Shown: positions 50,102 through 50,261 of the stretch, piece after piece
Layout of the letters: the number at the start of each line of letters is the position of its first letter
How positions within the stretch are numbered: position 1 is the stretch's first letter
NCBI GenBank assembly: GCA_047495785.1
Contig: JBLDXI010000016.1
Location: 930,001 to 994,000, forward strand
Direction: 5' to 3'
DNA length: 64,000 bases
Source of the DNA: Lepidodermella squamata
Lineage: Eukaryota; Animalia; Gastrotricha
Program-made: the position numbers and the translations under genes
Notes under the pieces: generated by a model
What the model saw: the letters and a program-made list of their open reading frames with translations, nothing else
The model's database searches: none
Told to the model about the DNA's origin: nothing

Positions 50102-50261
50102 ACGGGTGTGGCGCGAACGCCGGTACCCAAGTGAAATATTTTGCACCCGACTCCGCCGATGAGGCAGAGCGCAGGGGTCAGCGGACCGCAGTGCAATGGC
50201 CCGCCTCGCCCTGGGGCGACCGACTTGCTGAGCTCGGTGCATCCCAGTGCCAGGTAAGTTT
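50102..50261 (-). ncRNA. U1: U1 snRNA (divergent variant)
   Basis: 5' AAACTTACCTGG, four stem-loops, ATTGCAC U1A loop, terminal GGCG-TTCG-CGCC hairpin, and a 3'-box-like GTTACGAAAA downstream. Confidence 0.92.

Follow-up and report, generated by a model that had tools for sequence, protein, structure and literature searches.

Loop I polymorphism and a family-wide non-canonical Sm site in the multicopy U1 snRNA genes of the gastrotrich Lepidodermella squamata

Families of variant U1 snRNAs are known from several animals and include mouse U1b, the embryonic U1 of Xenopus and sea urchin and the isoforms of Drosophila and Bombyx. In human, variant U1 (vU1) genes occupy dozens of loci and differ from each other by point changes that are mostly situated in the stem-loops (PMC10870369, PMC8457000). 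Some of the human variants are altered in the Sm site, and two of these, vU1.15 (U127C) and vU1A5 (G130A), retain Sm-protein binding (PMC10870369). The recognition of loop I by U1-70K was described by Kondo et al. 2015 (PMC4383343): a pair between A29 and A36 closes the loop, U30, C31 and A32 make close protein contacts to Leu175/Asp177 and Phe106/Phe148, and C33 and G34, which are embraced by loop 3 of U1-70K, are held via stacking and phosphate salt bridges (Arg191, Lys138). Here, a U1 gene of Lepidodermella squamata is compared with these systems.

The gene lies in a stretch of 64,000 nucleotides (C16:930001-994000, hereafter the window) of a genome assembly of 121 Mb in 151 contigs. Rfam RF00003 matched it over model positions 1-166 with 101.4 bits (E 2.4e-24; gathering threshold 69.5 bits), and its features are listed in Table 1. 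A previous reading of the sequence alone had placed a U1 snRNA at 50102-50261 without giving its strand; the Rfam match has exactly these coordinates, and the gene is full-length and read from the minus strand.

Table 1. Features of the U1 locus, in window coordinates.
Feature	Position	Strand	Remarks
U1 snRNA coding region, 160 nt	50102..50261	-	Rfam RF00003; RNA nt 1 = 50261
5' arm AAACUUACCUGG, pairs with 5' splice site	50250..50261	-	RNA nt 1-16 invariant in 26/26 distinct copies
Loop I GCUCAGCAAG, U1-70K docking loop	50224..50233	-	RNA nt 29-38 = human G28-G37
Loop II CAUUGCAC, U1A docking loop	50191..50198	-	RNA nt 64-71; same as Rfam consensus; invariant in every copy
Single-stranded Sm region AAAAUAUUUCACUU, 14 nt	50129..50142	-	RNA nt 120-133; precedes stem IV
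Octamer-like block ATATGCTAAGCA, presumed proximal promoter element	50323..50335 (about -74..-62)	-	Fixed distance from +1
Upstream blocks GATTGGCGTCGG (about -40..-29) and AAATCTATTCAACT (-14..-1)	50262..50301	-	Conserved across flank families
3'-box-like A-rich element AAAATGTTACGAAAAT	50086..50101	-	Directly after RNA end; recurs after most copies
tRNA-iMet 3' part, 5'-truncated, with T-run	50362..50424	-	Homology to full tRNA-Met upstream of U1 in L001, L005, L009, L011 and L020

The splice-site pairing end, the AUUGCAC loop, helix H and the four paired stems, all of which the sequence-only reading had reported, were recovered. The 5' arm carries the 5' splice-site complementarity (ACUUACCUG) that is typical of U1, helix H is formed by GCAC/GUGC, and stem-loop III and stem-loop IV (UUCG loop) are present. 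When the RNA was placed on the Rfam structure, 42 of the 45 pairs were standard; the other three (20:46, 93:112 and 139:154) are non-standard in all copies of the genome too. A minimum-free-energy fold, which is independent of the Rfam structure, recovered 38 of the 45 pairs. The gene at 50102-50261 is a genuine, intact-looking U1 gene. It resembles canonical metazoan U1 (RF00003; human RNU1) in length class, four-way junction, ACUUACCUG arm, loop II AUUGCAC, helix H and a stem IV with UUCG-type loop. It differs from canonical U1 in the start of the RNA (AAA instead of AUA), in loop I, which reads GCUCAGCAAG instead of GAUCACGAAG and deviates at human positions 29, 33 and 34, and in the Sm region, which reads AAUAUUUCAC instead of AAUUUGUGG and has no GG after the U tract. 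Both alterations had been pointed out before and are real.

Genome-wide, the covariance model gave 42 matches above threshold, and about 50 candidates were found at the DNA level. At least 43 U1 loci were retrieved, comprising 41 full-length copies (the one in the window included), L038 and L041. The copies are concentrated on C7 (1.0-1.57 Mb), C16 (0.98-1.07 Mb) and C17, and the others are scattered. L038 has an altered 3' end and the loop I sequence GCUCAGCAAG. L041 (C31:1768975-1769106) is truncated, having lost stem IV and everything past the Sm region, and carries the canonical GAUCACGAAG loop; it is a genuine decayed copy and provides the benchmark for decay in this genome. A complete tRNA-iMet is located upstream of L041. 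The copies represent 26 distinct U1 sequences. The exact 160-nt sequence of the window occurs only once in the genome, and 18 sister copies are 1-3 nt away from it. In sequencing run X5, the summed contig depth was about 5,000-12,000 over the U1 body versus about 55 on unique flanks, which is not a copy number. The real number of U1 copies may be higher than the roughly 45-50 that were assembled. It had been asked whether canonical U1 copies exist elsewhere in the genome, and the answer is divided: copies with canonical loop I do exist (three of them full-length), but a canonical Sm site is found in none of the 41 full-length copies.

Loop I occurs in about nine versions, which vary at three positions only (human A29, C33 and G34); UCA and AAG are constant across the copies, except for one copy that ends in AAU. 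The window's version, GCUCAGCAAG, forms the largest class with 20 of the 41 full copies, followed by GAUCAACAAG (seven), GAUCAUGAAG (five), canonical GAUCACGAAG (L004, L011 and L012, plus the truncated L041), GAUCAGCAAG (two) and four singletons. As a natural background, U1 genes from 114 metagenome contigs were used, of which 99 were usable. Position 33 varies freely in these genes (A40/U22/C21/G16), position 34 is G in 73 and C in 17, and the version GAUCAGCAAG was seen five times. At position 29, 89 of the 99 genes have A, seven have G and two have U, and the lone C looks mis-anchored. The natural genes with G29 mostly carry U36 (GGUCA..AUG or ..UUG; metagenome loci L064, L100, L103, L156 and L157), which suggests that positions 29 and 36 co-vary across lineages as a loop-closing pair; the C29 copies of this genome retain A36. 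For the C29 loop, RNAfold predicted that additional C·G and U·A pairs form, that the G before them is bulged and that the loop shrinks to 5 nt. Compared with a loop I of the GAUCA(N)(G/C)AAG type, the window copy keeps UCA and AAG, stays within natural variation at positions 33 and 34 and has C at position 29. Since positions 33 and 34 vary in nature and fit the contacts described by Kondo et al., two of the three differences appear to be ordinary and C29 alone appears unusual.

The possibility raised before, that the window copy is a specialised variant, is not supported: its loop class is the largest in the genome (20/41), its Sm site is universal, and its changes at 33 and 34 are ordinary natural variation. 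Likewise, a vU1-like minority isoform beside a dominant canonical U1 was considered and rejected, as the window class is the largest and the Sm site is universal. The family resembles the human vU1 families in its dozens of loci, in point differences that lie mostly in the stem-loops and in carrying Sm-site changes. In L. squamata, however, the non-canonical loop class forms the majority when genes are counted, and the Sm change is fixed throughout the family instead of marking a minority.

U1-70K is encoded at a single locus (PF12220) with GT-AG introns. A second U1-70K for the variant loops was ruled out, as there is one PF12220 locus and the nearest other RRM has ≤47% identity. The protein was compared with human U1-70K exon by exon. 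Inspection of the RRM, where co-evolution with the RNA had been proposed, gave a mixed picture: Y112, F148, R172, D177, R190, R191 and L196 are kept, but K138T, L175V and R200K are changes relative to human, and loop 3 between beta2 and beta3 is rewritten from YSKRSGKP to KDTETEKS. The rewritten loop 3 is suggestive, being compatible with a relaxed or altered reading of the variable loop I positions.

The sequence AAUAUUUCAC (RNA nt 122-131) is identical in all 26 distinct sequences and in 41 of 41 full-length copies, and just upstream of it only two singleton changes were found. It lies at the expected place of the Sm site, in a U-rich single strand between helix H and stem IV, and departs from the RAUUU(G/U)UGG type. 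Two registers are possible. In the first, given by the Rfam alignment, the ring heptad would be AAUAUUU compared with AAUUUGU in human, corresponding to one U-to-A change, at a position assigned to SmD3 (Kondo et al. 2015, PMC4383343), and a change of the downstream GG to CA. In the second, the heptad would be UAUUUCA, which has AUUUC in common with the U5 of this genome and UUUC with its U4. The U4 and U5 genes (loci L049-L056; U4 on C54, U5 on C24/C25) have the Sm sites ACUUUCUGG and GAUUUCUUGG, respectively, both with a C within the U tract at the sixth position, and the U2 Sm site is canonical (GAUUUUUGG).

Among about 90 natural U1 genes from metagenome contigs, AAUAUUUCAC was found in none, and no U1 gene with AATATTTCAC came up when metagenomes were scanned, in a collection that may not contain this lineage. 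The Sm site AAUUUCUG occurred eight times among the natural metagenome U1 genes and CAUUUCUCC once (L111). The metagenome loci L061, L096 and L136 (AAUUUCUG) and L111 (CAUUUCUCC) resemble the family in having C at the sixth Sm position; in L111 the downstream GG is missing as well, and the U2 linked to it has AAUUUCUCG. In contrast to the U1 of L. squamata, none of these C-containing loci has an A inserted in the U tract (AAUAUUU). L111 3103-4093 (metagenome contig Ga0335398_10047367) belongs to a eukaryote with linked U5, U2 and U1, has Sm sites with C and no downstream GG in both U1 and U2, and is the closest natural parallel that was encountered.

All seven canonical Sm proteins were identified among 17 LSM-fold loci. 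SmD3, SmF, SmD2 (C-terminal exon) and SmD1 were aligned residue by residue to the human chains; SmB, SmE and SmG were compared by eye from the translations. In SmD3, both L3 (EDNMN) and L5 (IRGS) are identical to human, and SmF keeps DGYMN in L3 and IRCNN in L5. SmD2 has HFNM instead of HCNM in L3 and keeps LRGDS in L5, and SmD1 has DVAMN instead of DVSMN in L3 and keeps IRGNN in L5. The sixth Sm-site position, which is C in U4 and U5, is assigned to SmD1, whose L3 change is the sole one among SmD1, SmD3 and SmF. Retuned Sm pockets were thus ruled out for SmD3, SmF, SmD2 (C-terminal exon) and SmD1, whose loops are nearly identical to human. The earlier suggestion of co-evolved Sm recognition is unsupported, because these loops are conserved and the ring must also bind the canonical U2 site. 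Of the two options offered for the Sm site, a feature special to one copy fell away and a trait of the lineage or gene family was borne out by all 41 full copies. The odd U1 Sm site is therefore such a trait and apparently tolerated, and nothing in the compared pocket loops points to a retuned Sm ring. Tolerance is plausible in view of the Sm binding of human vU1.15 and vU1A5, because Sm pockets accept single deviations and because stem-loop I together with U1-70K, and not the Sm site alone, steers the assembly of the human U1 core; in a passage of PMC5131779 (citing Yong 2002 and So 2016), U1 core assembly is said to rely on stem-loop I and U1-70K and not on an Sm site with adjacent 3' stem-loop.

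Double compensatory changes among the U1 paralogues affect five pairs (22 cells), a result matched in 0 of 500 shuffles, and when the partner column was slid as a control, pairing dropped from 93% to about 40%. Divergence within the window's class is 1.13% in the bodies and reaches about 26% over the 100 nt upstream and about 46% over the 40 nt downstream. The five compensatory pairs and the low body divergence show constraint or gene conversion; the low body divergence could be explained by gene conversion alone. The preserved pairing had been taken before as a sign of selection rather than decay, and the compensatory pairs and the contrast between bodies and flanks bear this out. Between the window copy and its segmental duplicate L030, three body differences were found versus about 13 predicted from the flanks (P about 0.001), and the last 100 nt upstream are nearly identical too, so that a conversion tract between the two is possible. 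In both, a main-class body is combined with L001-type flanks. The classes of body and flank are therefore partly discordant, which points to gene conversion acting besides selection.

Outside the RNA, 15 otherwise unrelated flank families share three blocks at fixed distances from +1, with the consensus ATAtgCAAATgA at -74..-63, gaAtGgGg at -34..-26 and taaA.ct.ttgCcACT at -16..-1. Most copies are followed by a 3' box (AAAAT..ACGAAAA; anchored consensus AAA...Aa.aA.AAA). The window copy has all three blocks and the 3' box, and its octamer-like block agrees with the consensus at 9/12 positions. The blocks would act as promoter elements and the 3' box in 3'-end processing. About 100 nt upstream of the window's U1 lies a tRNA-iMet remnant, at which tRNA detection calls no tRNA. 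The tRNA-Met is complete upstream of most other U1 copies and 5'-truncated in the window and in L030; the unit common to all copies consists of the tRNA-iMet 3' part, about 115 nt of spacer and U1. The presence of tRNA-Met upstream of most U1 copies indicates that the duplicating unit is a tRNA-iMet/U1 cassette.

The summed contig depth of run X5 was very high over the window's tRNA-iMet piece as well. The neighbourhood contains a dense tRNA island (window 49327-49718 (-), 52465-52536 (-) and 54793-56903): tRNAs Gln-CTG, Gly-TCC and Ser-AGA are located directly downstream of the U1 gene, in an order shared with L030, one tRNA-Met lies at 52.5 kb, and another ten tRNAs are found at 54.8-56.9 kb. 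At 51033-51613 a tandem array was observed, with a 33-nt sub-repeat, a 159-nt higher-order unit, 3.4 copies and 97% matches, of which L030 has one 159-nt unit; the array may be a repeat within the coding sequence of a nearby gene.

Sequencing runs were searched with the 160-nt gene, and among the matching runs none was on record as RNA. The contigs of the best four runs, aligned to the gene, extend into the flanks of paralogous genomic copies and these runs are therefore DNA. Contigs of run X3, which carries the label of a different organism, and two metagenomes contain the same loop I and Sm sequence too.

Taken together, the window gene is considered a functional-looking member of the animal's ordinary multicopy U1 family with tolerated Sm drift, a reading to which a probability of about 0.7 is given. 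Counted against it are that every run matching the gene is DNA, that C29 is essentially absent in the 99 natural U1 genes and AAUAUUUCAC absent in about 90 of them, the 5-nt loop I predicted by RNAfold, the truncated upstream tRNA-iMet, the octamer-like block with 9/12 matches and a low body divergence that gene conversion alone could produce. Distinct embryonic and adult U1 are known in frogs, mice and sea urchins, and the loop I classes could similarly be U1 isoforms for different uses, either specific to stage or tissue or graded in U1-70K affinity, with the window copy in one specialised class. Such isoforms would fit the nine loop versions, with compensatory changes in stem I by which every class remains foldable, the rewriting of the U1-70K loop around positions 33 and 34, and the presence of C29 with three stem backgrounds, those of the main class, L017 and L037. 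Moreover, loop classes mostly track promoter-block types (ATATGCAAAT with CTATTGCCACT, GCATACGCAAAT with CCTTTGGCCACT, GGAATAACCAAAT with GGACCTTTGGCCACT and GAATATGCTAA with CTATTCAACT). However, the discordance of body and flank classes in the window and L030 points to gene conversion and not to separate lineages, there is one U1-70K without paralogue, and species differ freely at positions 33 and 34 with no known consequence, so that isoforms are considered rather unlikely. A related and still bolder proposal is that the recognition of stem-loop I by U1-70K has become looser or been re-specified in this lineage: a single U1-70K with a rewritten, acidic loop 3 (K138T) would serve a U1 population dominated by a C29 loop that is hardly ever seen elsewhere, and the loop classes with their own promoter types would form snRNPs that differ in U1-70K affinity or assembly efficiency and are used differentially. 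This proposal is regarded as unlikely.

Alternatively, the window copy or the whole GCUCAGCAAG class could be recently amplified silent pseudogenes, with the real U1 coming from the few genes with canonical loop. Such genes exist, and the GCUCAGCAAG class lies in segmental duplications on C7 and C16, which would agree with recent amplification; the rarity of C29 in nature, the degenerate octamer-like block of the main class (AATAACCAAAT), the broken tRNA-iMet next to the window copy and the fact that all sequencing runs matching the gene are DNA were also counted in its favour. Against this reading, the bodies stay within 1.1% while the flanks diverge by 26-46%, and in 19 copies neither the arm nor the loops, helix H or the Sm site have suffered a disruptive change. 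The promoter-like blocks and the 3' box are still in place, the truly truncated L041 shows what decay looks like locally, and the same class is found in contigs of a run labelled as another organism. Pseudogenes are therefore judged very improbable.

If the window gene is an ordinary family member, the family would spread as a small tRNA-iMet/U1 cassette. With its unchanged ACUUACCUG arm the RNA would base-pair to 5' splice sites, and with its unchanged loop II it would bind U1A. The single U1-70K would be bound through loop I, in which the close-contact nucleotides U30, C31, A32, A35, A36 and G37 are kept and changes fall on naturally free positions (33 and 34) or on a position that mainly closes the loop (29). 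The drifted site (AAUAUUU or UAUUUCA), common to every U1 copy, would be where the Sm ring assembles.

For annotation, this means that a U1 with GCUCAGCAAG and AAUAUUUCAC would be the normal U1 of this genome and neither a pseudogene nor an exotic variant. The family would provide a natural data point for the extent to which changes of the U1 Sm site and of position 29 are tolerated while the Sm proteins stay unchanged, and Sm drift with unchanged Sm proteins fits a U1 core assembly that relies on stem-loop I and U1-70K. With nine classes of loop I and one remodelled U1-70K, the family would also form a small, testable system for the tolerance between RRM and loop.
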